From the NCBI GenBank assembly GCA_043228905.1, contig JBHGNT010000018.1, forward strand, positions 11,532,001-11,596,000: a stretch of DNA of 64,000 bases, in the 5' to 3' direction. Positions within the stretch are counted from its first letter, which is position 1. Each line of letters starts with the position of its first letter. The translations under genes and the position numbers were made by a program. The stretch is from Azolla caroliniana. Lineage: Eukaryota > Plantae > Polypodiophyta. The notes under the pieces are model-generated. The model was not told the DNA's origin. It was given only the letters and a program-made list of their open reading frames with translations, and made no database searches. Shown here piece by piece: positions 1 to 58,000 of this stretch.

Positions 1-2318
1 TATGACTCCCCCTGCATATGTCATGACGTATCCAGATGTAGATCGGCTGGTATCTACATCAACCGACATGTCTGAATCAATGAAGCCTTCTAGTTGGGGT
101 TTTCCGGAGCCGAATCGGAGGCACATGTTCGAGTTGCCTTTCAAGTACCCGAGTATCCACTTGACCGTGGTCCAATGTTCTCTTCCCGGATTTCTCATGA
201 GCCGGCTAACCACTCTGACTGCATATTTGATATCCTGTCGGGTATAAACCATTGCGTATATCAAACTTCTGATAGCAAAGGCATATGGTACATTCATCAT
301 CTCCGACTTTTCCGTCTTTGTGTCTCGGACAACTTGCAATTTGTCAGAAGTGTTGACCAGACTAGCTTCACATCCAACATGTTGAACCTTTGAAGCACCT
401 TTGTCACGTATTGTTCCTATGACAACCACAACTGCTTCTTCGACCGGTTCCGGATTATGTGCATCCCCAAAATCTATCTCGTTGGACCCATATCTTTCAT
501 TGCAAATGACTATATCAAGGCCTTCTTTAGCATTCCAATTTTGATATGGTCCCATCCTATGATCAACATGTCGTCCACATACAGTAGTAGTACTAGGAAG
601 TCTCCTCCGTCAAACTTCTTCACAAATACGCAATGGTCGGTCTGTGTCTTGTGGTATCCTTGGTCAGTCATGAAGGAATTGAACTTCCGGTACCATTTCA
701 AGGGAGCTTGCTTTAGTCCATATAAGCTCTTCTTCAATTAGCACACCAGGTGCTCCTTCCCTTTCTTTACAAATCCCTCTGGTTGTTGCATGCAGATCTC
801 TTCTTCGAGGTCACAGTGCAGGAACATCGTCTTGACATCTAATTGCTCGACCTCGAGGTCCATGCTTGCCGCAATGCTCAACACAGTCCAGATGGATGTC
901 ATCTTTACTACCGGGGAAAATATCTCATCGAAATCCACTCCTATCTTCTGTTGGAAGCCCTTCACCAGAATGCGGGCCTTATACCTTGGTGGATTTCCGG
1001 CATCTCCCGGTTTCAACTTGTACACCCACTTGTTCCAAAGCGCTCTCTTTCCTTTCGACGGCTTTGTCAGTTCATATGTGTGGTTCTCATGCAAGGAATC
1101 CATCTCATCCTGCATGGCACTTAACCACTTGCGGTTGTGGGTGTCTTTCTTTGCTTCTTCGAAGCTTTCCAGCTCCCCTTTGTCGGCCAATAAAACATGC
1201 TCTCCATCTGAAAATCTTCACGGGGGCTTTCTCTCTCTAAGGGGATATCTTTGTCCTTGGTTTTCGACCACCAGCTCCTCCGTCTATTCTTCATCCGAAT
1301 CCGATTCGGGGTCTTTTCCAGTTTCGGTGTTTGATTCTTATTCGGTCGTTCAGTTCTTTGTCTGATTCGGCCGGTTCATCATGGTATTCAACGGACATCT
1401 GGCTTCTAACCGGATGTGTCCTTGCATCCTCCAACCGATTTCTATCGGTCGACCCAGAGTCCACTGCCTTCTTCTCCAACTCCCAGTCGGCAATGCTTGT
1501 CTTCCTTGAAGACTATGTCTCGATTCCAGAGGACCTTTTTGTCGACCAAGTCCCACACTCGGTAGCCGAACTCATCATCACCGTATCCAAGGAATATGCA
1601 TGGCCAGGACTTCGGATCCAATTTTTGTCATCTTCTCCTTTGCTACATGCACGTAGGCAAGACACCCAAACACCTTTAGATGCCGGTAGGACACGTCTTT
1701 GCCGGTCCATACTTCCTACGGTGTGTCTCCTTCCAAGGGTGCTAAGGGTGATCTGTTTATCACATACGTCACTGTCATTGGCGCCACAACCCAAAACGTC
1801 TTGGGCAACTTTGCATGTGCCAACATGCTCCGGACTCTCTCCATCACAATCTGGTTCATTCTTTCGGCCAATCCGTTCAACTCCAGCGTCTTCGAGCCGG
1901 ATTCCCTTTGACCAACAATACTCCTCGAACTGCCCCCGGTATTCTCCTCCATTGTCCGCTCCAACCACCTTTAGCTTCCGACTAGTTTCTCTTTCGACTC
2001 TCACATGGAATTCCTTGAAGACAGATAATACTTGGTCCTTTGTCTTCAATGGTGAGACCCACAACTTCTGGTTGTGGTCATCTATGAACGGCATGAAGTA
2101 TTGTGATCCGACATGTGACTTCTTGTCCACTAGGCATACATCGGTATGCAGAAGCTCTAGCGGTGCATTCCGTCTCATAAGTGGTCTTGTCCGGAAAGAG
2201 GTTCGGTTTTGTGTGTCAGCTAAACAATCGGTGCACTTCTCAAGCTGCACTTCTTTCACCTCTGGAATGAGGTTATCTTCAGCAAGTTTATGCATCCCTT
2301 TCTCGCTCATGTGGCATA
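1..2318 (-). mobile_element. Decayed Ty1/Copia (family A, Tnt1/Tork-like) pol: GAG-pre-integrase, integrase, RT, start of RNase H
   Basis: ORF fragments (ELLHTDVC, ELNGLAERMN, RYKARILVKGFQQ, LLLYVDDML) are collinear with the intact polyprotein at 55654-59727; many stops and frameshifts. Confidence 0.95.
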
Positions 2319-2869
2319 GGATAAAAGCATGCGAGTGGAAACACTATTATAGCTAATTAGCTACTAAAATGGCCATAGCTAATTAGCTATTTGTTTAGCT
2401 AGTCTTTTTTGTGGGAAAATCAAATATTTGAAAAACTAATTTATGAAAAAACTCAAATATTTGAACTTTTGTTTCAGACGTAGTGGAACTTGGGGAATAG
2501 CACCATCATCTAAGGTCGACTTCAATGTCATCAATTTCCTGTTTAGCCTAAGTTTGATTTTGAACGCAGATGGAGTACTCAGAGCACGAATGTAGACGTA
2601 CCTCCCGCAGCAGTAGAAAATCAACATTGCAGATTGAGAGCTACAACACAGAACCCGCTTGATCATCGTCCAAGTATGTTTCAGTTACAGAAACCCCAAA
2701 CATTTGTTTTTTCTTTTTGACTACTGTGTGAACTTTGGTGCCGATTCATATTTCCCCAAAATCGAATAGGGCGAAGTCCTTGGAGTCCCATACAAGGATG
2801 TCTCGCAGATCGGGGAGTAGCAGCAGGTTGTTTATATTACTTTTTTTGTGTTTAATCCTGTCTTTAGTG

Positions 2870-3370
2870 ATGATTGGGGTTTCTGATTGAAATTTCTGAT
2901 TAGGGTTTTTGTTTATAAATTTCTGATTAGAATTTCTGATTAGGGTTTGTGATTATAAATTTCTGATTAGAATTTCTGAATAGGGTTTCTGGTTACAAAT
3001 TTTGATTACAGATTAGAATTTCTTATTAGAATTTTTGAATAGGGTTTTTGTTTATAAATTTCTATTTAGAATTTCTAATTAGGGTTTGTGATTGAAATTT
3101 CTGATTAGGGTTTTTTATTATAAATTTCTTATTAGAATTTCTGAATAGGGTTTCTGGTTACAAACTGCTGATTACAGATTTTGATTAGGGTTTCTGATTT
3201 CAAACTTCTGATTACAGATTTTGATTAGGGTTTCTGATTTCAAATTTCTGAATACAAATTATGATTAGGGTTTCTGATTTGCTAAGTTAAAGATTTTGCA
3301 CTATTTTTGTTGTTGTTGATTGGGGTTTCTGATTCTGACATATTTTGATTTTGCACTATTTCTGATTTCT
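2870..3370 (+). repeat. Telo-box (TAGGGTTT)-containing minisatellite in a putative 5'-UTR intron
   Basis: Repeated gattagggtttctgatt-like units between cag|GT (~2826) and tttcAG|ATG (3385/3386). Confidence 0.8.
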
Positions 3371-3385
3371 GAAATGATATTTCAG

Positions 3386-4712
3386 ATGGCTCGTTCCTCC
3401 GTATCCGAGAGTGCTAAACTTCACAAAATTTTGCGAGACAAAGGAGGACTTCCACAACACCTATGGTCTGTCACTCGAGGGTGTTGACCCTGCTGTCCTA
3501 AGTGATAAATTGATCAGTGATGTAGACTGGATGACAGTATATACAGTGCCTAGAGTCAAAGGCAAGGTCAAGCTGAAGCATGTACGAGCCGACTTGTACG
3601 ATGACTGCATGAGGCTGCACCAGAAAGTTCATCAGGAGATCCCAGTCAACAATGAGTTGTCAATTTCATTTGCTAGAGCATTTGCATATGAGTACTGCAA
3701 AACAACGAAGGAATCCAGAGACCCTAAAATGTATAGGGTAGCTTGGGCAATCTATGGTGAGGCATCGATAAAAAGATGCCAAAAGATGGGGACCTTGGCA
3801 CAAAAAATAGACAGATTTTGGAGCATGGCAGTTGTTGATGCAACTGCCGACTCCTAGCAAAACCGGGGGCATACACCACACCGACACCCAAGGAAAGCCA
3901 ATGTCGATGATACAGGTGAGACATTGGTTAGCTATATGCTAAAAAATGTCCATGAAGCCTATGAGACATTGGCATTTTTTAAGACTGATTTAGAGAAAGC
4001 CACAATGGCTTCTGCAATGGAGAGCAAAGTTACTTCCGTTGTTACAACGATTAGAAATAAGATTCAGGTAACTATTGTTTTGCTGGTATGTGATTGTGTT
4101 ATAAATAACTTTAAGGGTAAAATGTGCTAATCAAGCATTATCTGGAATAGGTTGTGCAACAGGAGCTTGAATTAGAGGGGCCACTAGATCCCCAACGTAA
4201 AATACAATTGCAAATAGAGATCCAGGTTCTTTCAATGAACCTGGACCTTCTAGGTGTAAATATTGTTGCAGATTACAATTTGGAAAAGCTTCAAGTAAGT
4301 TAATTATTCCTGAGCAAAGTTGGTGTATCTTTCTCAAACAGGAATAATTAATCGGTAAATTTCTCTGCTGCGTTGAAGGAACAATACATTCATCAAGAAC
4401 AGGTAGTTAGCTGCCTTAAGAAGCAGCTACATTTCGTGGAGGGAATGGTAAGGACCAGATAGGATTTGGACCTGAACATTCTTGCTCCCTTACCAAATGC
4501 AGGAGAACCAGAAAATGATTTATTGACAGTTCAAGCACGTTGCATCGCTTGCGGGTTAGGTGTGGAGGACAAAACTGCGTCTTTGTTGGTTCACCTACAA
4601 CCATGCAACCACACATACCATCTGCTTTGTTTTCAACATGCCTGTCGAATTGCTGCATTCTGTTTGGGAGATTGCAATACAACTCTACCAAATGAGTGGA
4701 GAAAACTAACAG
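3386..4712 (+). pseudogene. Transposon accessory gene: unknown N-terminal domain, helical linker, C-terminal RING-H2 finger
   Basis: ATG 3386 with a frameshift into the 3411 frame, which continues past one TAG to a donor at 4067/4068. Acceptor at 4162; exon 2 is in frame with ORF 4466-4732 (a few stops). RING pattern C-x2-C-x17-C-x-H-x2-H-x2-C-x10-C-x3-C at 4541-4675. Confidence 0.75.
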
Positions 4713-4724
4713 GTATACCATACT

Positions 4725-5448
4725 GTAGCTAATAAGCTTAGTCTTTTCTAATTAGCTAAGCCGTAAAAAGTATGGAAACTATTTTGTTGCTATCGTTGTA
4801 GTTGATTAGCTACTACCATAGTTGATTAAAGCAGCTAATAGCTATCCTATTAGCTAATTTGCTACTGCCATAGTTTACTACTGGCAGCTAATTAGCTAAG
4901 TGGCAGCTAGTTAGCTACTAGCTAATTAGCTATCCTACTGGCAGCTAATTAGCTATCCTAGTAGCTAATAAGCTATCCTAGCTACTCATAGCTAATTAGC
5001 TAGTACCATAGTTGTGTAAAGTAGCTAATTAGCTATCCTCCTAGCTAGCTAATTAGCTACTGGCAGCTAATGAGCTACTAGATAATTAGCTATCCTAGTA
5101 GCTAATTAGCTATGGTACTAGCTAATTCTCTAGTGCCATAGTTGTGTAAAAAAGCTAATTAGCTATCCCAGTAGCTAATTAGCTACTGGCAGCCAATTAG
5201 CTATCCTAGTAGCTAATAAGCTATCCTAGCTACTACATAGTTGAGAAAGTAGCTAATTAGCTATCATTGTAGCTAATTAGCTATCCTACTAGCTAATTAG
5301 CTACTGCCATAGTTGTGTAAAGTAGCTAATTAGCTACTGCCATAGTTGTGTAAAGTAGCTAATTAGCTATCCTAGTAGCTAATAAGCTATCCTAGCTACT
5401 ACATAGTTGAGAAAGTAGCTAATTAGCTATCATTGTAGCTAATTAGCT
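4725..5448. repeat. Palindromic TAGCTAATTAGCTA satellite array (left part of a putative intron split by the Gypsy)
   Basis: Dozens of copies of the 14-bp palindrome with short spacers. Confidence 0.95.
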
Positions 5449-5976
5449 TACTTTAGTACTTACATCTATAATATTTGGTCAATGTGGAAGTATTCCTTCA
5501 AGGATGTGGTGGTGTCTGTTCCAGACTCAACTCTTGCCCAGTATTTTGCGAAATAACTGTCATCAGGATACTTTCCTCGAAGGTGATCATAAAGATCTAA
5601 TGATATTTCAGTGAAGCTAAGCGTGTTAACTTCACGGATGCGACTTAGTGCATCAGCGACAATGTTCATGGAACCTTTACGATATCGTATGGAAAAATCA
5701 AAGTCCTGGATGAGATCAGCCCATCGTGCCTTACGACCTTTCAGGTCTTGTTGGTCACAAAAATATTTCAAGGACTCATGGTCCGTAGTTACCACAAAGT
5801 GATTTCCATAAAGATAATGGCGCCATGTTTTGAGCGCATGTATAACTGCAAATAATTCCTTTTCTTGAACGGTATACCGACATTGAGCAGAATCAAGTTT
5901 CTTACTCTCGAACGCTATTGGTTTACCATCTTGATATAAGACATCACCTATAGCATAATCGCTCGCATCGGTTTCA

Positions 5977-6236
5977 ACCTCAAAAGGTTTTGAAGGATCA
6001 GGTAAAAGAAGTGAAGGAGCCTTGCAAACTAGGTCCTTGAGTTCCTTAAAGGCGAGGTCTAGTGTACCATTCCACACAATAGGTTTTGTAGACTTACGTG
6101 TTTGACCTCAAAAGGTTTTGAAGGATCAGGTAAAAGAAGTGAAGGAGCCTTGCAAACTAGGTCCTTGAGTTCCTTAAAGGCGAGGTCTAGTGTACCATTC
6201 CACACAATAGGTTTTGTAGACTTACGTGTTTGACCT
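5977..6236. repeat. 128-bp tandem duplication in Gypsy pol
   Basis: Identical copies at 5977-6104 and 6105-6232, bounded by ACCT microhomology. Confidence 0.95.
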
Positions 6237-9200
6237 TTTAAAAGATCAGTAAACGGCGTCGTCAATTGGGAGTAATTACGAAGAGACTTTCGCAAAAACC
6301 CGACAAAACCAAGGAATGATCGAACTTCTCGAATATTCCGAAGAGTGGGCCAAAGCTTGATTTTCTCAATGTGAGAAGGATCAATTTCAACTCCTCATTC
6401 GGTTATGAGATGTCCTAGATAAGTAATTGATTTCTTGAAGAACTCACATTTTGAGATCTTTGCATAAAACTGTTTGTCACGCAATGTTTGTAAAACAAAG
6501 CGGACATGTCTAGCATGTTCTTGTAATGTACAACTATAAACTAAAATATCATCCAAGAAAATAACGACAAATTTTCCAAGTTGTTCTCGGAAAATGTCAT
6601 TAATTTCTTTTTGAAAAGTAGCCGGAGCATTGGTCAAACCAAAAGGCATAACCAAAAACTCGTAATGGCCATAGCGCGTACGAAATGCCGTTTTAGGAAC
6701 ATCGTCCTCACTTATTCGTATTTGATGGTAACCAGTACGGAGATCAAGTTTCGTAAAATACCGAGCTCCTTGGAGACGGTCAATTAGATCGTCAGCCCGG
6801 GGCAATGGGTACGAATTCTTGATCGTCACTTTATTCAAGCGTCGGTAATTAATACACATACGCCATGTGCCCTCTTTCTTTTTAACCAAGAGAATTGGTG
6901 CACCCCATGGAGATTTACTATAACGTATATAACCCATTCGTAAATAGTCCTTGAGTTGCTTAGATACCTCATCTTCTTCGGATCAACTTAAGCGATATGG
7001 AGGTATACTTATTGGTGCAACACCAAGTACAATATCTATACGATGGTCTATATTACGTTTAGGAGGTAACCCATCAAGTAGTTCACTTGGAAAAACATCA
7101 TGAAAATCATTTAAGATTTCATCAAGTTGTTGTTCAAAATATGATAATTGAACCAGGACATTATCGATATTGTAAACGTGAATGTCCGGATCAAGTACAC
7201 AATAAAATAACGTAGAACAAGACAACTCGGATATTGATGGACACGAGGAAACAATCGAGAGGGATTGTTTTTTTACACATTGAATAAATTGCGTACAATC
7301 GTTCAATACAAAAGAAATGGAATGGTGAACCCAATCAATAAATAAAGAAGAGTTTTTATTATAAAACCAGGGATAACCCAGTATTACATCAGTGGTACAA
7401 AGATTCATTACATGGAAGTCTACTTCCTTTATATAAGTATCAATAGAAATTCCTAATGAATGAATCGCCCCGTTGATGTATTGTACTCTTCCATCAGCCA
7501 AGTGCACCGTGTAGGTGTGATCACTTACGGTGGGTTGGATTCCCCATATCTGAACCAAATGATCATTCACAAAATTGTGTGAGCTTCCCGAATCAAATAA
7601 AAATTGTATGGGAGATCCATTGATATACCCGTTTGCTCGTAGTAAATCATTGGGACTCAATACATAGTGAGGGAAAGAACATTGACAATTACTTAAATGA
7701 TGTGTATAGACCTGAAGGACATTAGGAATCTGACCTTTATGGTCTGCAGCTTTAGCTTTGTTGTCGTGCTCTTTCCGTTGGAGCTTTCGACATTGATCTT
7801 TTGTATGACCCTTCTTTTTGCAGAATACACAAAAAGGATGTTGTCGCTTACAATCGCTATCCAGGAATTCGTTGGGTGTCTTGCGTTTCCCAACAAATTG
7901 CGACTGCTTAGTCCCGGGCGCTTCGTTGGGTTTGTTATGGTCCTTCTTCGAAGTGCGTTGATAGCGAAGAACTATTTCAACGGCCTCTTCGAAGGATTTT
8001 GGATCCTTATTGTGCACTATCCAGTGATAGTCCGAATTGGGGATGCCATTGACAAAACAAGCTATCAACCAATTGTCCCCTTCTAGACCCGATTTTTGGA
8101 TTTGGGTTCTAGCATGGTGAACATAGTCTTCTAGCGAGGAAAATTTCCTGCTAGAGAGGTTCATTAAAGCTTGTGCTGCCTCGGTTCAAGAGGGAGGTTG
8201 CAGAAATTGGCCCTTAAAAACCGTGACAAAATCTGTCCAGGTATCGGGCAATTTCCCCATAGTACGGAGCCCACGCCAACAGGCGGCGGCCTTACCCCCG
8301 AGTTCTCGGCCGACATATGCAATCTTCGTACTATCTGGCGTGGGATAGAGCTCAAAATGAGACTCCCATCGTCCCATCCATGTGCAGATTGCTTCTTCGG
8401 TTCTTTCCTTTTTGTCTCCCGTAAATGGCTTAACGACAAATGATGGTTCACCTTGTCGCTCATCAGGTCTATTAGTCTCACGTTGTAGACTAATGACACG
8501 TGCCTCGAGAGCACTTTGAGATTGCCGAAGTTCGGTCATCTGTTGAGCGGTGAAACTAAGGTATTGGGTTATTTGTGCCAAATACATCTCAGTGGACATT
8601 TGTCTAGGAGGATTCCCTTGAGTTCCTTCCTCTTGAGCGGATGACATCGGGTCGTTAATTTGAGCCATTAAAGATTATTTCTGGAAAAGAAATAGGACAA
8701 GGTCAGAAATATAGTCATAACATTATGTCGTGATGTAAACATATCATGGGCGAGCATTAATCGATATCATTATCTCACGTCAATACCCCTCTAGACGTAT
8801 GAGATGAGGTTCAAGATCAGGTTACTATGGTAACACAAAGGTGTTTTAAAAACCATGGGGGTGACAAATAAATGTCTTTCCCTGATCTCTATATCGATTT
8901 TTTCATGGTGGCTCCCCGAGGCTCAACCATGTATGTTCGCGTCATGAATTGTTTATACATGAAAAAAATGTTAATAATAAACTATGTTTCGGTGCCCACA
9001 TATGTGGTTTCGGCTCTTTAAGTCCTATTACGAGGACCCCGAGGTGCACTTAGACCTTAAGTCTAAACATGTGTTATAGTCATATGTATCAAGGACGTTG
9101 TATGCATAGTCTTGGTCATATTTGAACTCGAGACCTCGAGAACAAATACATTAAACACTTGAGGCAACCAAGTAAGTTGCTCTTCTCGAATGCTTAATGT

Positions 9201-10360
9201 TTGATGCGTATAAGAGATATGCGAGGCAATTGATCATATATGTTTTTTTTTTTTAAAAGAACATATATGTCAAGGGTCCTTATTTCGCCCTCATTTACCA
9301 AAACTATGTTGGTACGTTACCTAACCTCAAGTCTCGTAATTACGATGGCATACGCCAAACTGCAACCTAATGGTCAAGCCAAATGAGCCCTCGTTTCGTA
9401 GTAGGCTCATGTGGGCCATCACATGGTCACGCCATTACGAATGCCTCTCGTAAGAACGAGCTCATGGTGGCATCGTATCCATGTAACGAGGGAGGGATGT
9501 TGGATACGTGCGTCATTGGAGCGACCTCACTTGAAGTGGGTCAAGCCCTACGTACTTAACATCATTTTGGCTATTGGCGTTTCTTTACGTAACGAAATCG
9601 AGGTCGTCAACGGGGTTATCAACAATAAAACAATGTTGAAAAAGGGATGGTGACAACGCCATTCTCACAAAAATGTGAGGACGGCCACCAACATCCTTTT
9701 CCCGACAAGGACAACTTTCGATATAATCACGTAATAACGAATATACACATATGTTCACTTATCACATATATACGATCAAATACGTATATATGTGACCACA
9801 TATGCCTATATTAAACATATCGTTATATTAAATAGCCACAAATGATGTGATCGAGATACGTAATCGAGGTATATACCTCTACGCACACGAAACATCCACA
9901 AATAAGAGATCATCGTAATACGCAATTGAGGTATTGACCTCTTACGCATACGAGACCAACCGCATATCGTTTACTACAAATCAACAACTCATACGCAAAC
10001 ATAACATATGTTCGTGAACGTAATACGTAATTGAGGTATTAACCTCGTACGCATACGACACTCATCACATATTATTAATATGTCAAACGAGGTATTGACC
10101 TCGTGCACATATGTAAACGTTTTAGATAATCAATTAAAGACCACTACAACATTATTGACTTAATGAAAAACAAATGACATATAAACTAAACACATGATTA
10201 GATGGGAGAAGAGAGAATAGAAAAAAAATTCTGGAAAGAGTTACCGAAGTTCTTTGTTGATCGTTGTCTAGATCAAGGCCGACCGCACAATGATCGATCA
10301 ACATCAATCAAAAGACAAATGAAAAACAAAGAAACATTAGTACATAAATCTGATACCAAA

Positions 10361-10815
10361 TATTATAGATCTAAATATTAAAGTAAGCTTAAGATAAGGA
10401 TAAAGTAATAATAGATAGAAAGGAGAAAGAGAAAGAAGGGTGTCGATCCACCCGACGACCCCCGAGCGAAGGGATCGAGACGGACTCGAGCCTCGATCGA
10501 CGTCCCATACCACCGCCGTGGCGTCAAGTCGTACCTGGTGCTGGCGCGCTCGCTACAAGAGTTGACCCACCACACGAGCAGAGTCTCGATGTAGTCAAAA
10601 GATGATCAAATGAGGGTAGCTAGGCCTCTTATTTATAACGATACCCAAGGCCCCCAGGCAAGTTCACACTTGACCTAATGGGTTGTCTCAATCCCAAGGA
10701 TTAAAAGTAATCCTCCCCTTCTTTACACTCTCGTTTAACCCTCACACTTATCCACGTGTATAGAATACTACGGTAAATTCTCACCACGGGATATTATATG
10801 GTCATGCCCGTAACA
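10361..10815 (-). repeat. 5' LTR of the Met-primed Gypsy
   Basis: Starts TGTTACGGG on the minus strand, TATA-like box at ~10630, abuts the PBS. Confidence 0.85.
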
Positions 10816-11158
10816 CTAGCTACTACCATAGTTGAGTAAAGTAGCTAATTAGCTATCCTAGCTACTACCATAGTTAGTAAAGTAGCTAATTAGCTATCCT
10901 AGCTACTACCATAGTTGAGTAAAGTAGCGAATTAGCTATCCTAGCTATTACCATAGTTGAGTAAAGTAGCTAATTAGCTATTGTACTAGCTAATTAGCTA
11001 TCCTAGCTTCTACCATAGTAGAGTAAAGTAGCTAATTAGCTATCCTAGCTATTACCATAGTTGAGTAAAGTAGCTAATTAGCTATTGTACTAGCTAATTA
11101 GCTATCCTAGCTTCTACCATAGTTTAGTAAAGTAGCTAATTAGCTATCCTAAATAGCT
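10816..11158. repeat. TAGCTAATTAGCTA satellite (right part of the split array)
   Basis: ~36-bp higher-order units containing the palindrome, ending just before acceptor ttgtAG (11173). Confidence 0.95.
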
Positions 11159-11173
11159 GCCATGTTATTGTAG

Positions 11174-11709
11174 AATCTTGTGGATTAAGGACGGCACATG
11201 ACGTGTCTAGTGCTGATGACGTTGCAACAGATGAGGATATTGCTGCCAACATGGTTGAAAGTAAGAGTCCTGCTATCACATCTCCTTCACATCAGCTCCA
11301 CCCTATTCTTTTGGAACAGTGTACTGAATTAGGCAACGATGTGAAATGCCATGAAATAGTGGAAAGAACATGTAAAACTGAGGTTCACAACAACAGTGTT
11401 TATGAACACTTGATGCAACATTTCTTCGAATCTCAAGACCTTGATTCCACCCCACCGAGCCCAACTACTGAAAATGTCCAAACAGATCCCTCTGTACTTG
11501 AAAATCTAGTTCAAGAAACGGTTGATGTGCAATTAGCTGCTGAGACGATGGGAAGGTTGTTGGAGGAGGACACACTTGCGCATTGGGTGAAAGAAGCAAG
11601 GCTAAATGGGGAACCGACCAGATAAAGGCTGAAGAAGGGGCCACGATCGGGAACAAGACCAGTTACTCGGTCAAGGGGCCCAGACGTAGTGGAGCGAAAT
11701 ACTATTTAG
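11174..11709 (+). pseudogene. Acidic, low-complexity exon of a transposon accessory gene
   Basis: ORF 11203-11625 follows a 3' splice site; the frame continues past one TAA to TAG at 11709. Confidence 0.5.
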
Positions 11710-11958
11710 TTGGATATGATTGTTAGCTTAGGGATTTTGCTAGGGTTTTATGAAGTTTTACTATCCTGTTGGACAAGTAAAACCTTAGATTGGTTGTTGC
11801 TTGATCCACATTATGTAATGGAACTCTATGATGTTTTTCCAAGATAATTTGAAGAGTGTTGTTCTATGACTGAAACTCTTTGATGTTCAGGATGTTGTTT
11901 TCTGAGACTGTTAGTTACTTTGTGAGTGTGAATATGTTGGTGTTTTCTGATGTTGCAG

Positions 11959-12764
11959 AGTCTAAAGGGTTTGATTCTATTGCTCGTAAGGCCAATGGCA
12001 GTGTGGATACTGTTGATGTTGCGGCGTGTTTAAAGGGCCCCATCTTGAAAGTAGATGTAGCAACTAACACAAGTGATCTGGTCACACAAGTTGATCAAGC
12101 ATGTTGCACGGATGACTTGGTGTTGCAGGTAGATGCAGCATGTTGCACGGATGACTTGGGGTTGGAGGTAGATGCAGCATGTGATACCAGTGGACTGATA
12201 TCGAGCAGATCAGTAGCTACATGCACCGAGGTAATCCAAGGATTGATAACTAAGTCGACAAAACAAGAGCACCAGAATGTGAAGCCAGGCCCAACACAGT
12301 CGACTAGGGGTTTGAAGAGGAAAAGGACGCCAGTTGTGTCGGCCGAACCTGAGCTGATTGAGATTGATTGTGTCCTACCAGAAAATGGTGTAATAGCGGC
12401 TCAGTTTCAGGAATGGAAACCTAAACCACTAGAAGTTGAAAGAAGAGCCTTGATCTTGGAGCTTGATAAAGTCTTGATGAGTGTGAGATATATGCAGCCA
12501 AAGAGGGACACGAATGAGTTTCTAGAGTGGGTTGTGCAATACTTTGATTTGTTTATTTGGAGTGAAAAACCAAAATCAGATGTGTGAAAGTGTTTAGCAA
12601 GATTCTTCCCAAAATGGCGAAGTCGTTTTAAAGGTCAAAGGGCACGAGAAAATTGTGAGCAAATGGAAGCTGCAAGATTCAAGAGACTTTCTGATTTTTG
12701 GGCTACTTGGCCTGAATATAATGCCGACAACACATTGATTTTGGATACAGAACATTCCTCTTGA
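11959..12764 (+). pseudogene. Accessory exon ending in an FCP1/SCP (NIF, HAD-family) phosphatase-like domain with a degenerate catalytic motif
   Basis: RALILELDKVL...EFLEWVVQYFDLFIWS...(stop)...RENC...FKRLSDFWATWPEYNADNTLILDT follows the order of FCP1-homology motifs (LVLDLDxTL, EFL, F.v.vWS, KdL..vW, NTLLiDD). Confidence 0.7.
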
Positions 12765-14519
12765 ATATAACGTGCTCAGATGATTTACACTCCTCTTGCG
12801 GGCTTGATCGACAAATTGGGCACCCACATGTGCAAACTGTATTAGTTAGGGATGTGTTATGGTGACGTAGTAGATTAACAGAGTCCTTCAGAAAACCCAT
12901 CTGTACATGGTAAATGCAACAACATGTGTATCGATCCTTTAAGCGTCTCACAAAGTGTGGCTTAAGAGACTCGAATGTTCGTAGTTGAACTTTGATATTT
13001 GGATGCATTTGTTTGAACCTAATAAATAAATCGACCTGCGTAATAAAGGGGAATTAGTTATTCTCGTAACTAGCTAACTATCCTAGTAGCTAATTAGTTA
13101 TTCTAGTAGCTAATTATCTGTTCTAGTAGCTTATTAGCTATTCTAGTAGCTAATTAGCTATCATGGTAGCTAATTAGCTGTCCTAGTAGCTAATTATCTA
13201 TCATGGTAGCTAATTAGCTGTCCTAGTAGCTAATTAGCTGTTATAGTAGCTAATTAGCTGTCCTAGTAGCTAATTAGCTGGTCTAGTAGCTAATTAGCTA
13301 TCATGTTGGCTAATTAGCTGTCCTAGTAGCTAATTAGCTTTCCTAGTAACTAATTAGCTATCATGGTAGCTAATTAACTGGTCTAGTAGCTAATTAGCTA
13401 TCATGGTGGCTAATTAGTTTTCCTAGTAGCTAATTAGCTATCACGGTAGCTAATTAGCTTTCATAGTAGTTAATTAGCTGGTAATAACGAAATTAGCTAT
13501 CCTAGTAGCTAATTAGTTGTCCTGGTAGCTAGTTAGCTATCATGGTAGCTAGTTAGCTATTTTGGTGGCTAATTATCTGGTAGTAACTAAATTAGCTATT
13601 GAGAATAGCTAATTAGCTATCATGGTAGTAGCTATTGAGAGTAGCTAGTTACCTATATAGTAGCTATCCTAGTAGCTAACTGAGGTAAATGTAACTGATA
13701 AGCTAATTAGCTTTTCTGCTAACTGAGCTAATAACTTTCCGTGTAGAGTCAAAACAAATGTTGAGATAAATGTAAATACCAGAGGTACATCAAGAAGATG
13801 AATGGGATGCTCCTCGTATTGATTTCTTCCAACACATTTCCTGCATAAATCCTTTTTATTGGGTGAACTCTCATTAGTCCAAAACATTGTGATTACATCC
13901 TTGATTGCAAATGTTATGGGTGTCATTGGCTTACATCTTGTAGTTAGCTTTAGTAGACTAGTTCCTTCACCCGAGGAAATTATATGATTCATTGTATTAT
14001 ACACTGTTTTTCTACTAACACCAATTACCTTAGATAGCTCAATGATGTTTATATCGTCAACATCACTATTAAGTAACATCATTAGACTAGACCTTTTTAA
14101 GACAAGATTATCTTCTGACCTGCTCATGGATACGAAACTATTACGAAGATTATTTACTAAAACACATGATATGTTTGCATTAAGACCATCACAATCAACT
14201 AAGTCCTTTATCGATGGATCATTACATATTCCATAAAGTACTACCTTCTTTTCTTCATTGCTGATGTGCTTGGTTTGAACATTGAAATAGTCTACAACCT
14301 TTCTCTCTATGATGGTAGTCGCATTACTTACATTCTCAGCTAAACTATCCTTACCTTTACTAAGTGTGGCTTTCATATCCTTCAACAATGATGTTTCCTT
14401 TTTTTTCCTGCCCAATAGTTTTGTATGGCTTGTTGTGTCCTGATAGCATCATCCCTATCCTTATGATCATCGAGGGGTAATTCTAAACACCCTTCTTCCC
14501 CTTCCATTTGGCTGGACAT
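12765..14519 (-). pseudogene. Sola2-like transposase, N-terminal part; DDE core deleted
   Basis: ATG 14519, one frameshift in a poly-A run, GT-AG intron 13779-13036 joining HPIHLLDVPL|VDLFIRFKQMHPNIKVQLRTFESLKPHFVRRLKDRYTCCCIYH in frame. Confidence 0.7.
13053..13725. repeat. TAGCTAATTAGCT satellite filling the transposase intron
   Basis: ~20-bp period units such as tcctagtagctaattagctg. Confidence 0.95.
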
Positions 14520-14815
14520 ATTAAAACCCTAAATTTCCAGAAAAAAAAACAAGTATTTAAGATGGCTATGGGCAACAACAATACACAAAAATATTCCACA
14601 ATACACAAGATTAGACACAACAATACACAAGATAATCAATAGACAGAAAAGTTATTACAATCCAAGACCGAACAGTAGAGGAGTTCACTCCGTTGGATCG
14701 AACAGTTGAGGAGGCGATCCAGGACCTACCAATGGCGACAACTGAGTGTAGAATGTTGTCGTTGGATAAGTGAACTCCGTCAAATCGAAATGTGGAAGCA
14801 ATCCAGGACTGGACA

Positions 14816-15172
14816 ATAGCGGCCCCTGAGTTTAGAGTGGCACAGAGAAGAGAACCCCGTCAGATTGAACAACTCTTTGATGATGCTTGGAACGCACAGT
14901 AGCGGCCCCTGAGTGTAGAGTGGCATAGAGAAGAGAACCCCGTCAGATTGAACAGCTCTTTGATGATGCTTGGAACGCACAGTAGGGGCCCTTGAGTGTA
15001 GAGTGGCACAAAGAAGAGAACCCCGCCAGATTGAACAGCTCTTTGATGATGCTTGGAACGCACAGTAGCGGCTCCTGAGTGTAGAGTGACACAGAGAAGA
15101 CAACCCCGTCAGATTGAATAGCTCTTTGATGATGCTTGGAACGCATAGTAGCGGCCCCTGATGGTAGAGTGG
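14816..15172. repeat. 83-bp tandem repeat, about 4.3 copies, upstream of the transposase
   Basis: cagattgaa anchor at 14861, 14944, 15027, 15110. Confidence 0.95.
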
Positions 15173-15539
15173 CGGCAAGTGGACTCGATAGGGTTTAGCA
15201 ACAGTGGTAGCAACTAACCCACAATACTCAACTAGAGATGGCCTACGTGATGTGGCAAAGGATCATGCATAATGGACCTAGGAATTCGATATATAATTTA
15301 TGGTACACATTTATGGTGCACATATCAATTTATGTTGCACGTTTATGTTGCACATTTATGGCACTCATTTACATATGTAATTAAAACACTCTAATATTTT
15401 CAATGGTAGTTTTTTGCATAGTTAATTTATTAATGATGGCTTTTTACTAAAATGACTATTTATCAATGGTAGCTTTTTGCATAGCTAATTAGCTATGTCA
15501 AGGACATCGCTAATTGTTTCCACTCTCATGCTTTCACCC

Positions 15540-16847
15540 CACAACCTCTTGTACCACAACTCATCGGCATTGTCGGATGCCACGTTCACATCTTCTCGGC
15601 ATATCCAGGCATGCATCAGGTACAAGGTGTTGATCTTTCGGGCTCAGGCCACGATCAAGCTCCCTTTGCAAAACTTCATAACTCCGTTCTAGATGCTACC
15701 CGTGTAGCCTTCATCAACTAGACGACGAGCGGATATTAGATTCAACCGAACATCTAGAATGTGTCGTACATCTTTCAACAGCAATTTGCGTCGTCAACCA
15801 CACATCTCCTATGCCAACAATTCGGCATGCGCCTTCATTTCCCATCCGGACACAACCGTGATCTCCAGTTCTATAAGATGAGAAGCCCTTCCGGTCGGGG
15901 TTCAGATGGAACAACGCGCCAAAGTCAACCACCCATGTCGTCTCGTCGTGCATGGCACCTAACCACTTGCGGTTGTGGGTGTCTTTCTTTGCTTCTTCGA
16001 AGCTTTTTGGCTCCCCTTCGTCGGCCAATAAAACATGCTCTGCATCCAAAAATCTCTAGGGGGGCCTTTCTCTCTCTAAGAGGATATCTCTGTCCTTGCT
16101 TTTCGACCACCGGCTCCTCCGTCTATTCTTCATCTGAATCTGATTCCGGTGTCTGATTCTTGTTCTATCGGTTTAGTTCATTGTCCGAATGCAGCCGGTT
16201 CATCATGGTCTTCGGTGGACATCCAGCTTCTAACCGGATGTGTCCTTGCATCTTCCAACCGAATTCTTTCGGTCAACCCAAAGTCCACTATCTTCTTATC
16301 CGACTCCCAGTTAGCAATGGTGTTGTCTTCCTTGAAGACTATGTCTCAAATCCGGAAGAGTTTTTTTTCAACCAAGTCCCACACTCGGTAGTTGAACTCA
16401 TCATCATCATATCCAAGGAATATGCATGGTCGGGACTTCGGATCCAATTTTGCTCTCTTGTCCTTTGCTACATGCACGTAGGCAAGACACCGAAACACCT
16501 TTAGATGCCAGTAGGACACATCTTTGCCGGTCCATACTCCCTGCGGTGTGTCTCCTTCCAAGGGTGTTGAGGGTGATCTGTTTATCACGTACGTCGTTGT
16601 CATCAGCACCTCAACCAAAAATGTCTTGGGCAATTTTGCATGTGCCAATTTTCCATCACAATCCGGTTCATTCTTTCAGCCAATCCTTTCAACTCCAGCG
16701 TCTTCGAGTCGGATTCCCTTCGACCAGCAATACTCCTAAACTGCCCCCGGTATTCTCCTCCCTTTGTCCGCTCCAACCGCCTTTAGCTTCCGGCCAGTTT
16801 CTCTTTCCACTCTCGCGTGGAATTCCTTGAAGACGGATAATACCTGG
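15540..16847 (-). mobile_element. Continuation of Copia A: protease/pre-integrase (15540-~15942), then a duplicated integrase-to-RT-start block (~15943-16847)
   Basis: Fusion KWLGAMHDE|TTWVVD; the block is homologous to ~1105-2037. Confidence 0.9.
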
Positions 16848-17178
16848 TGTTGTCGGGGTGGGGAGTGAAGCCTAGAATGGCTTCACCCCCCTCCCAAGGG
16901 GGTCACGATAGGGAGAGAGCTAGAGAGAGAGACAAATAGGAAATGACACAAATGTGAGAGGGGAAAATTGTACATCCATTAGATGCCCCATAAGGGGTTT
17001 ATATAATACATAATGTAACGGTAATAATTGTTGTTACAAAAGAGACGACCGTTACACTCTTGTCACATGCACATAATTGTGCATGTGCTCACACATACTC
17101 ATTTACTTTACACATACACATCAACCACATCATTACACATACCCTTATGCCTCCCCATATATTCTTACGGGGGTAACA
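16848..17178 (-). repeat. Probable solo LTR (~330 bp)
   Basis: TGTT...AACA ends, TATA at ~17000, GA tract; flanks cctgg/catgg may be a TSD, but the host does not resume to the right. Confidence 0.5.
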
Positions 17179-55002: not shown

Positions 55003-58000
55003 TGTTGGGATTTCGGTCCCTTTCGGATGGGATGGTCGGATATCGGAGATGAATGCCGACAAGCCCGGTTTCGGTTTCGGATCCGGATGACGAAGACCCC
55101 GGCTTCGGTGCCGGATGACGAATGTACCCGGAGAGCGATCCGGATGCAGGGACATATCCGTGAATATGTTCGCTACGAGCCCCCTGAGGCTATAGTTGTA
55201 AATAGCCCAAAGTCATATAAGTATAAATATGACTTAGGGCAAACAGTTTTACGTTGCTTCTCATTTTTCTGTTTTTCCACTTTAGAGGAGTGAAGAGGGA
55301 GCAGCCGTGTGAGTGAGAGAGAGAGAGAGAGCGCGAGAGAGGAAGAGGTCGACGCCTCTGTGTAACACCGCCGCCTGTGGCGAAGGAAGCGAGCTCAAGG
55401 TCGTTGCCTTGCAGCTCGCCATTGTAAATCTCTCTGTGCATAGTTTGGTTTGGAGTCTCGCACTCCCGTGGTTTTTCCCATATAGGGTTTTCCACGTTAA
55501 TCCTTGTGTACTCGCGTTTCTTCGTTTTGTTTCTACGTGTGTTTCCTATTTTCTGCTCCATTGATCCGCGATTAATCGGTTGTGGCCGAGGGAAGAAGGT
55601 AAATAGAAGCGTCTATTCCTTTCAAATTGGTATCAGAGCGACTGTTGCAGAAAATGGAAGGCGGCGGAAGCGGGCAGCCGATGATGATGGTGCTGAATGC
55701 ACAGAATTACGCCGACTGGAAGATCAAGATGGAGGATCTTCTGATTGTTCGGGACCTGTACGAACCGATTGACAGGTCGGAAATACCGAAAGGGGTACTT
55801 GAGTCGGAGTGGAAGCTCCTGAACCGGAAAGCCGTAGCGACGATCCGACAATATGTCGATGTAAGCGTCCTACAACATGTGGCGAACGACACCAACGCAT
55901 ACGAGATGTGGAAGAAGCTGTCGGGCCTCTATGAGAGGAAGAATGCGTTGAACCGGACCTCCCTGATGAGGAAGATAGTGAATCTCAAGTACCGGGACGG
56001 CGAGAGTATGGTGGAACACGTAAGCACGTTCATGGGATTCGTGAACCAGCTTGCGGCGATCAAGTTCCCGTTGGAGGATGCAATGCAAGCCATCATCCTG
56101 ATGTGTACATTGCCGGACAGCTGGGAGAACTTGGTGGTGACTCTCAGCACCTCCTGCACCGAAGATAACTTGTCTCTACAAACGGTAAAGACAAGTATTT
56201 TGAATGAAGAAGCGCGTCGGAGAGATAAGGAACCGACCTCCGACCCGAAGATGTTGTTTACCGAATCGGATCGGGGAAGACAATGGAACCGGAGTCCGCA
56301 AAGACGGGAGAAGTCGGGGACCCGGTCGCAGTCAAGAGGAAGGCCTACATGCTTCCACTGTGGGAAGCCGGGGCACTTCCGAAAGAATTGTCGGCATTAC
56401 CGAAAAGACATTGGAACCGACAACACCGATTCGAAGAAGTCACCGGAGAGAAACGGTGCATACCGGGGAGCCACGGACCGGAATGGTTCGGATCGGCGAG
56501 GACAGGACCGGAAAGGAACAATGGCACTCGCGGCAAGTGAGGAAGAAATCATGCTCATCACCGAAGAAGGTGAACTAAACATTGCCGGCGATGAGACGAC
56601 CTGGGTGGTCGATTCCGGAGCATCGTTCCACCTGACCCCGGAGAGAAGATACTTCTCATCCTACACAGCCGGTGAGCATGGCTGTGTTCGGATGGGAAAC
56701 GAAGGTACGTGCCGGATTGCCGGCATAGGAGACGTGTGGTTGACAACCCCGACCGGATGCAAAATGCTGCTGAAGAATGTCCGACACGTTCCGGAGGTCC
56801 GACTGAACCTGATTTCGGCCGGGAGGCTAGATGATGAAGGCTACACGGGTAGCATCCGGAACGGTGTCATGAAGTTCAGCAAGGGGAGCTTGATAGTGGC
56901 TCGGGCCCGGAAGGTCAACACACTGTACCTGATGAATGCCCGGCTATGTCCGGAAGAGCTGAATGTGGCAGCCGACACTGCCGGTGAGCTGTGGCACAAA
57001 AGACTGTGCCACATGAGTGAGAAGGGGATGAAGAGGCTTGCAGAAGACAACCTTATTCCAGTGAAGCACGTGCACCTGGAGAAGTGCACCGATTGCCTGG
57101 CCGGTAAACAGAACCGAACCTCCTTCCACTCAAGGCCACCGACGAGACGTAGCGCACCATTGGAGTTGGTGCACACCGACGTGTGTCAGGTAGAAGCGAA
57201 GTCACATGGCGGAGCCCAGTACTTCGTAACATTCATAGATGACCACAGCCGAAGACTGTGGACGGCACCTTTGAAGACAAAGGACCAAGTATTGTGCGTC
57301 TTCAAAGAACTCCACGCGAGAGTGGAAAGAGAATCCGGCAAGAAGCTGAAAGCGATACGAGCGGATAACGGAGGAGAATACCGGGGACAGTTCCAGGAGT
57401 ACTGTCGCTCGAAGGGAATCCGACTCGAGTTTACTGTGCCGAAGACGCCGGAACTGAACGGGCTGGCCGAGAGGATGAACCGGACCATAATGGAGAGGGT
57501 CCGGAGTATGCTGGCGCATGCGAAATTACCCAAGGGATTTTGGGCTGAGGCAATGTCGACGGCGACATATGTGATAAACCGATCACCCTCAGTACCTTTG
57601 GACGGAGACACGCCGCAGAGAGTGTGGACCGGTAGAGAAGTATCCTACCGGCATCTAAAGGTGTTCGGGTGTCTCGCATACGTGCATGTGGCAAAGGACC
57701 GGAGAGGAAAGCTAGATCCGAAGACCCGGCCATGCATATTCCTCGGTTACGGCGACGACGAGTTCGGCTACCGAGTATGGGACCCGGTCGACAAGAAGAT
57801 ATTCAGGAGTCGAGACATCATCTTCATGGAGGACAAGACACTCGCCGACTGGGAGTCGGAGAAGAAGATGAAGAGCTCCAAGTCGACCGGTGAGGATCAA
57901 CTCTACGAGGAGCAGTCCCGACCGGCAAGGGACCGGTTAACACTCGAGGATCCGGCCGAAGACGGTGAAGAAACAGAACCGGCCGAAGAAGACGAAAATG

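Follow-up and report, generated by a model that had tools for sequence, protein, structure and literature searches.

Positions 2319-15539 of the 64,000-nt stretch of Azolla caroliniana DNA analysed here (contig JBHGNT010000018.1; the whole stretch is called the window) are judged, with good confidence, to be a defective and immobile copy of a high-copy family of Sola2-type DNA transposons carrying a RING/NIF accessory unit. In order along the unit come a conserved N-terminal domain, a long coiled coil, the RING-H2-like finger, a linker containing a basic motif and, last, a HAD fold of NIF/FCP1 type. Related loci and contigs are referred to below by L numbers, and individual database proteins by P numbers.

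The unit is best seen in intact relatives of the window copy. A search with the NIF open reading frame (ORF) matched 15 proteins encoded on assembly contigs in ENA; four of these are full-length (347-389 amino acids, 67-93% identical). The 6.6-kb contig of one full-length match (L001) contains a linker ORF, an intact NIF ORF of 350 codons and a converging transposase ORF of 585 codons, together with an intron bearing the same palindrome as the window copy (TAGCTAATTAGCTA), a helix-turn-helix (HTH) exon and a terminal inverted repeat (TIR; GGGTAAAAGCATGCGAGTGGAAACA). A second contig (L010) has linker and NIF ORFs as in L001. In three further loci, L002, L008 and L009, whose transposases are 52, 49 and 46% identical to the family ORF respectively, the transposase lies on one strand and is followed by the NIF gene and then the RING gene on the other. 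Cargo order and orientation are thus the same in four lineages with transposases 46-59% identical, so the RING and FCP1-like exons recur in other lineages, a recurrence for which the preliminary description of this DNA had proposed a test, and are not a one-off capture. The NIF part is under purifying selection, with a ratio of nonsynonymous to synonymous substitution rates (dN/dS) of 0.40 between L001 and L010 (bootstrap confidence interval 0.28-0.55) that is similar in the N-terminal and NIF halves; for comparison, the value for the transposases of L002 and L003 is 0.09. Recurrence and selection together support the view that RING and NIF are genes of the element itself, and the earlier proposal of a cargo-carrying lineage is upheld.

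Intact members of the family are 10-12 kb in length. The L002 element is 12.4 kb, with the TIR GGGTATATGCATGAATAGGTGG, and that of L008 is 10.0 kb, with the TIR GGGT[TC][GA]AAGCATG[AG]ATAGGTGGTACAAAA. These TIRs are 23-29 bp long with the common start GGGT..GCATG, and the pattern GGGT..GCATG..GGTGG is similar across lineages and visibly related to the TIR of the window. The locus in the liverwort Calypogeia has a coiled-coil and RING protein in the equivalent place, the N-terminal domain of which aligns weakly with the profile of the other proteins (hhalign E = 1.7e-4). In L008 (10987-11531) and L009 (10949-11728) the region separating the RING gene from the end of the element contains long (CA)n and (GA)n microsatellites.

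The features of the window copy, from one target site duplication (TSD) to the other, are as follows.

2315-2318: left TSD copy, CATA (original target CACA), from alignment with the uninterrupted Copia paralogue at 56589-57867
2319-2343, plus strand: left TIR, 25 bp, GGATAAAAGCATGCGAGTGGAAACA
2350-2389: two subterminal copies of the 14-bp palindrome TAGCTAATTAGCTA
2833-3334: 13/40-bp tandem repeats upstream of the accessory gene (repeat families D3, D12 and D13)
3378-4127, plus strand: predicted accessory gene, covering the conserved N-terminal domain and the beginning of the coiled coil (tblastn to the RING proteins of L002, L008 and L009, 1e-14 to 5e-33)
4367-4712, plus strand: predicted accessory gene, RING-H2-like finger exon (CIAC...CNHTYHLLC...C..DC)
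4750-5479: array of TAGCTAATTAGCTA palindrome units, first part; probably intronic within the accessory gene
~5480-10815, minus strand: nested truncated Gypsy element with gag, protease, reverse transcriptase and RNase H, lacking integrase and a pair of long terminal repeats
10816-11173: palindrome array, second part, ending at the conserved acceptor TTGTAG|AATCT
11174-11640, plus strand: accessory linker exon with an acidic stretch and the basic motif RKRLKKG, lacking a start codon; 83% identical to L001 68-589
11856-12761, plus strand: NIF/FCP1-like pseudo-phosphatase exon, in which LILELDKVL replaces DxDxT
12724-12951, minus strand: remnant of the transposase catalytic exon, first 76 of 585 residues
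13059-13620: palindrome array in the transposase intron, 20-bp period (L001 equivalent 4113-4632)
13711-14519, minus strand: transposase exon 1 with HTH; frameshift near 14400
14730-15220: 83-bp subterminal tandem repeats (repeat families D10 and D16)
15482-15495: subterminal copy of the 14-bp palindrome
15515-15539, minus strand: right TIR, 25 bp, reverse complement GGGTGAAAGCATGAGAGTGGAAACA
15540-15543: right TSD copy, CACA, from the same Copia paralogue alignment

The 25-bp TIRs previously proposed to bound 2319-15539 are borne out. They are imperfect, being identical at 22 of 25 positions when 2319-2343 is compared with the reverse complement of 15515-15539, and their 20-nt core is found at just two sites in the 64 kb, both of them element ends, against a chance expectation of 0. 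The termini are GGGT/GGAT. For the empty site the two flanks were joined and the resulting sequence searched against the window. The uninterrupted Copia paralogue at 56589-57867 is 77% identical over the junction and reads ...CTCATGTGG-CACA-GTCTTTTG at the insertion point. The interrupted site has exactly four more bases than this paralogue, so the TSD is 4 bp in length, derived from a CACA target with a later C>T change in one copy. The length of the duplication that had been described as splitting a Copia coding motif is thereby confirmed, but its exactness is not; the flanks, CATA| and |CACA, match at three of four positions. Excision in silico of the element and one TSD copy rejoins the Copia frame ...KRLCHMSEKG. 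The insertion point lies in the integrase region of Copia (GAG-pre-integrase/integrase), between the Pol beta-barrel domain and the integrase core. The Copia copy used as the empty-site reference extends over 56589-58228 on the opposite strand, uninterrupted and 72-77% identical. A direct repeat of ~0.9 kb of Copia coding region flanks the insertion (1103-2036 and 15941-16848, 85-86% identical); both repeats map to 57290-58228 of the paralogue, an arrangement more suggestive of two Copia copies that overlap or have recombined than of a single simple element.

Without the Gypsy the window copy is ~7.9 kb in length. Private TAG stops (CAG>TAG) occur at 3855 and 4460, where C is present in nearly all family contigs, and more stops lie in the stretch 4128-4366 of the RING gene, which may hold a short intron. 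The linker exon has a stop at about 11623, and the NIF ORF is frameshifted near 12585 and lacks its final ~70 codons, being cut at residue 288 of 360. A deletion of ~2.1 kb lies between the NIF and transposase remnants, and the DDD core of the transposase is deleted. Contigs of other copies diverge from the window at 5479 and continue with sequence that is absent here, so the Gypsy event is specific to the window copy and deleted part of the element. Within the Gypsy fragment, the RNase H region contains a perfect 128-bp tandem duplication (5977-6232). The window copy is dead, and could be moved only by transposase supplied in trans. The earlier reading of a spliced transposase-like gene on the minus strand is correct for the HTH exon, but no more than 76 of the 585 residues of the catalytic exon are left; similarly, the RING-H2 and FCP1-like ORFs described as spliced exons on the plus strand are both present, but they are broken, and the RING part is largely a single ORF broken up by private stops. 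In the history that we propose, a Sola2-type element inserted into the Copia integrase region, generating the 4-bp duplication, and later acquired the truncated Gypsy and lost ~2 kb including the transposase catalytic core.

The intact transposase is encoded by two exons, with an N-terminal HTH and an RNase H-like DDD core (D187/D270/D311). More than 100 homologues of the 585-residue ORF were found; those with names belong to Klebsormidium, the liverworts Calypogeia and Riccia, Adiantum, Cryptomeria and Taxus. Fragments from Adiantum are the closest of the named proteins, and more distant homologues occur in a sea cucumber, a crinoid and a cockroach. The three aspartates are conserved in 22-25 of 25 diverse homologues. 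An AlphaFold model (AF2, from 25 homologues; predicted local distance difference test score 85.7) has an RNase H-like core with D187 on beta1, D270 after beta4 and D311 on the helix that follows. Foldseek searches with this model found RNase H-like enzymes only, with weak E-values (NurA, retroviral integrases, IstA, P element transposase and Metnase), as fits a DDE/D transposase having no solved relative. The intact catalytic ORF matched no Pfam family or PDB sequence, and Pfam searches with all the element ORFs of the window gave weak RING and HTH matches alone and no transposase family. The 103 HMMER matches to the HTH exon are mostly short unnamed exon fragments and do not help in classification. 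A look-alike search with a 116-residue exon yielded unnamed animal clusters and one weak lead, DUF7869. A PF20700 'Mutator' match in the cockroach protein P0119 (residues 602-660) is below the cut-off of that family.

The transposase has the motif blocks S.F..(F/L).P..V......C..C, DF(A/K)EN, F.SD...H, (F/V)WSDGA..FK and HGK(G/S)..D in the same order as Sola2_DFa-2 and Sola2_PPa-1 when compared by eye, and the spacing of its D-D-D residues is 83/41, against 87/43 in Sola2_DFa-2 (PMC3627910 supplement 3). On the basis of the ordered motifs, the D-D-D spacing and the 4-bp TSD, the family is very probably to be assigned to Sola2. This agrees with the original call, for which the GGGT/GGAT termini and the DDD enzyme also speak. 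Two distant homologues are annotated with further domains in the same protein, P0115 (818 amino acids, Logan contig) with an OTU cysteine protease domain and P0225 (Klebsormidium nitens, 1180 amino acids) with leucine-rich repeats; these are either more types of cargo or fusions in the gene models.

The palindrome TAGCTAATTAGCTA occurs in 28 copies in the window, all of them within 2350-15495. It adjoins both TIRs and fills both the transposase intron and the intron presumed to separate the RING and linker exons. L002 has a palindrome of its own, GGTAGCTACC, which occurs 25 times at the corresponding three kinds of site (14320-15494, 7708 and 17505). The two palindromes share a TAGCTA core, as if binding sites had co-evolved with the element. 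The palindromes are putative binding sites of the transposase HTH domain that may have multiplied into arrays.

The RING part of the accessory unit has C3H2C3 ligands, arranged as C-x2-C-x14-17-C-x-H-x2-H-x2-C-x9-11-C-x2-4-C in five lineages, and in most lineages the last pair of cysteines is C-x3-4-C. The model of the L002 RING protein has a confident helical N-terminal domain of ~140 residues (145-285), a coiled coil (319-454) and a C-terminal finger. The modelled finger can be superposed on the RING domains of HRD1 and RNF165 with template modelling (TM) scores of 0.70-0.78 according to the target, with weak E-values. Fold searches with the whole model are dominated by its coiled coil, and a look-alike search with the N-terminal domain gave no match.

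The NIF part is recognized by Pfam PF03031 in L001 (31.7 bits) and L002 (38.2 bits), above the cut-off of 21.8 bits; the ORF pieces of the window alone gave no match to this family. Searches of the PDB with single NIF ORFs were unsuccessful, and a profile alone succeeded. The profile, built of seven element NIF proteins, matched UBLCP1 (3shq; 4.3e-7) and CTDNEP1 (8ujl; 0.0047), making UBLCP1 the closest solved relative by sequence profile. Profile alignment places motif I by setting 'ildldkvL' on LVLDLDETL of CTDNEP1. Motif I is ELDKV in the window, L001, L010 and P0001-P0004, DMNGV in L002, DMNGL in L009 and DLQGV in L008, and the catalytic DxDx(T/V) motif, with its nucleophilic Asp and the general acid Asp at +2, is present in no lineage examined. 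By contrast, motifs II (WS[SE]) and III (K) are kept as in UBLCP1 and CTDNEP1, and motif IV is DD in three lineages and DT in that of the window. The fold is kept, but since motif I is replaced, and DD is changed to DT in the lineage of the window, its chemistry was probably lost, and the NIF proteins are probably catalytically dead. The idea that the NIF protein acts as a phosphatase on the C-terminal domain (CTD) of RNA polymerase (Pol) II, raised in the preliminary description, is therefore unlikely as stated; besides the missing catalytic motif, the nearest solved relative is UBLCP1 and not FCP1/SCP.

The RING and NIF ORFs are connected by potential splice sites. Every RING ORF ends just past a donor-like site in phase 1, the candidates being ACAG|GTATAC in the window (4712/4713), ATTG|GTAAGT in L002, TTTA|GTAAGT in L009 and CTAG|GTGGGG or TCGA|GTATGT in L008. 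The acceptors are compatible in phase, TTGTAG|AATCT in the window, L001 and L010 and TATGCAG|AGTCT in L002, and both yield ...|E-S.... The ORF that follows the acceptor has no ATG in L001. The linker contains a basic motif resembling a nuclear localization signal, RKRLKKG in L001 (470-560), KRRKLKKG in L002 (13522-13824) and KRTPKRQR in L009 (7446-7772). Each accessory exon was searched singly. Because phase-1 donors end the RING ORFs, and compatible acceptors without an ATG (L001) open the next ORF, the two parts are rather more likely than otherwise to be exons of one predicted multi-exon gene.

Several observations weigh against a Sola2-type family with a conserved accessory unit. The Pfam zf-RING_2 matches (E = 0.002-0.1) are all below the cut-offs, and the NIF proteins of different lineages are scarcely alike (BLASTP 9e-5, 26% identity). 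No NIF was found by tblastn or motif scan in the Calypogeia locus, and the loci of Cryptomeria (L006) and Klebsormidium (L007) have the transposase only, with neither NIF nor RING detected by the same two methods. The flanks of L002 (TCCA/TTCA) match at three of four positions, making an imperfect TSD, and those of L008 (AAGC/AATT) form no TSD despite its clear TIRs. The element was found in no RNA run, so that splicing, the fusion model and expression of the accessory gene stay predictions. The comparison with Sola2 was made by eye on printed sequences, and covered Sola2 alone within the Sola superfamily; in addition, a profile search returned no Dictyostelid protein among the best 120 of 174 hits. 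The transposase might on these grounds be placed in another superfamily, as a 'Sola-like' DDD sister group or an undescribed one, with a 4-bp TSD shared coincidentally with elements of the Chapaev, Ginger or Academ type. The reading by eye, rather than by computation, of homology to a reference Sola2 protein, the lack of a Pfam model, the generic character of the RNase H-like folds matched by Foldseek, and GGGT termini that differ from the GAA/GAG and TGTT of published Dictyostelid Sola2 elements would all be in keeping with this. Such a placement is nevertheless improbable given that five ordered blocks, including WSDGA..FK and HGK...D, match two published Sola2 transposases with nearly equal D-D-D spacing, that the TSD of the window element is 4 bp, and that the distant matches in echinoderms and insects, and the nearest feature-based look-alike clusters in molluscs, rotifers and cnidarians, have the patchy range typical of Sola.

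The accessory ORFs could also be captured pieces of host genes, that is, Pack-type cargo with no function for the element. Capture of host fragments is frequent in plant DNA transposons, and in the window both ORFs are broken and the RING matches fall short of the Pfam thresholds. Against capture stand the common order and orientation of both domains in four lineages with such divergent transposases, the existence of intact full-length NIF ORFs at 67-93% identity, and the upper confidence limit of 0.55 on dN/dS. Moreover all 15 NIF matches are unnamed ENA contig proteins, with no named plant gene among the matches listed, and both of the NIF-match contigs that were retrieved (L001 and L010) are element copies. 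The host-capture explanation is largely refuted, and we regard it as very improbable. The question of whether the element has one accessory gene or two is more evenly poised. That the RING and NIF proteins are products of two separate genes with no fusion is the less likely arrangement, though a serious one: the L002 RING ORF is a complete frame of 551 codons that ends in a stop of its own, an ATG start is called for the NIF ORFs of L002 and P0001-P0004, and the liverwort element has a RING protein without NIF. However, the stop of the RING ORF is shortly preceded by consensus donors (G|GTAAGT in L002, A|GTAAGT in L009), all of them in phase 1, and the next ORF opens at a conserved acceptor of compatible phase, lacking an ATG in L001. 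The 'ATG' of P0001-P0004 falls in an apparent polypyrimidine tract ahead of the AG, and the gene calls on the assembly contigs come from a prokaryotic-style caller. A single spliced gene within a Sola2-type element thus continues to be the arrangement that we favour.

Contigs from four DNA runs (three organisms) cover positions 2200-5600 thousands of times at 85-99% likeness, so the family is high-copy and common to related species. The lineage is high-copy in fern-like genomes and ranges from charophyte algae to gymnosperms. As outlined in two later accounts (PMC10741241 and PMC4455052) of the work of Bao, Jurka, Kapitonov & Jurka (2009), Sola2 elements have a 4-bp TSD, short TIRs, lengths of up to >10 kb and a DDD transposase. 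The elements described here are alike in all of these properties, and share DF.EN, WSDGA..FK and HGK...D with Sola2_DFa-2 and Sola2_PPa-1. They differ from known Sola2 elements in their streptophyte hosts (Klebsormidium, liverworts, ferns and gymnosperms), GGGT termini, N-terminal HTH exon, palindrome-filled introns and conserved RING/NIF accessory unit. Reviews treat Sola as uncommon in plants (PMC10741241, PMC12973397), a Sola1 of Physcomitrella being the one plant case named, and a repeat table for Ceratopteris lists 2,739 'Sola' copies (PMC6890710). Our literature search found no structural description of plant Sola elements.

The earlier statement that Sola elements are transposase-only is contradicted by the Sola2-Fanzor1 chimeras of Dictyostelium fasciculatum and Polysphondylium pallidum, published in 2013 (Bao & Jurka, PMC3627910). 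Like the present family these are multi-gene elements (10-15 kb) with a 4-bp TSD and a second large ORF, and have derivatives missing most of the transposase gene. Their passenger is a TnpB-like Fanzor nuclease, whereas here it is a RING-H2-like/NIF-like protein, and their TSDs are AT-rich (AWWT), compared with the CACA target here. Among plant TIR transposons, accessory proteins are known as VANC (VANDAL21), MURB (MuDR), the Myb-like ORF1 (PIF/Harbinger) and TnpA (CACTA) (PMC12973397). The present protein resembles these in being a fast-evolving, element-encoded second protein under selection, accompanied by lineage-specific DNA repeats near the ends; unlike it, they have neither a RING finger nor a NIF fold. 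The analogy with VANC drawn in the preliminary description is conjectural. No RING/NIF accessory gene was found described in any transposon in a literature search that was incomplete and did not include Repbase.

In the mechanism that we propose, the accessory protein would act as an E3 ligase, with the dead phosphatase fold holding a phosphorylated protein of the host or the element. Its action would aid transposition or blunt silencing, and would not be to dephosphorylate Pol II. The trapped protein may be, for example, the CTD of Pol II, IV or V, a silencing factor or, as for UBLCP1, a subunit of the proteasome. Taken as a whole, the proposal of a transposon ubiquitin ligase, in which a dead NIF fold serves as a phosphoprotein trap and the RING marks the target, and which has been kept in Sola2 since early land plants, is speculative and unlikely. 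If it were true, the accessory protein would be a module of counter-defence or of the licensing of transposition.

A finger resembling that of E3 ligases joined to a pseudo-phosphatase, under purifying selection, would be a new type of accessory gene for eukaryotic cut-and-paste transposons. The family also offers a testable case of the interplay between large non-angiosperm genomes and their DNA transposons. It carries a risk for annotation, in that the RING and 'FCP1 homology' ORFs of the element will be called as host genes in the genomes of ferns and gymnosperms.

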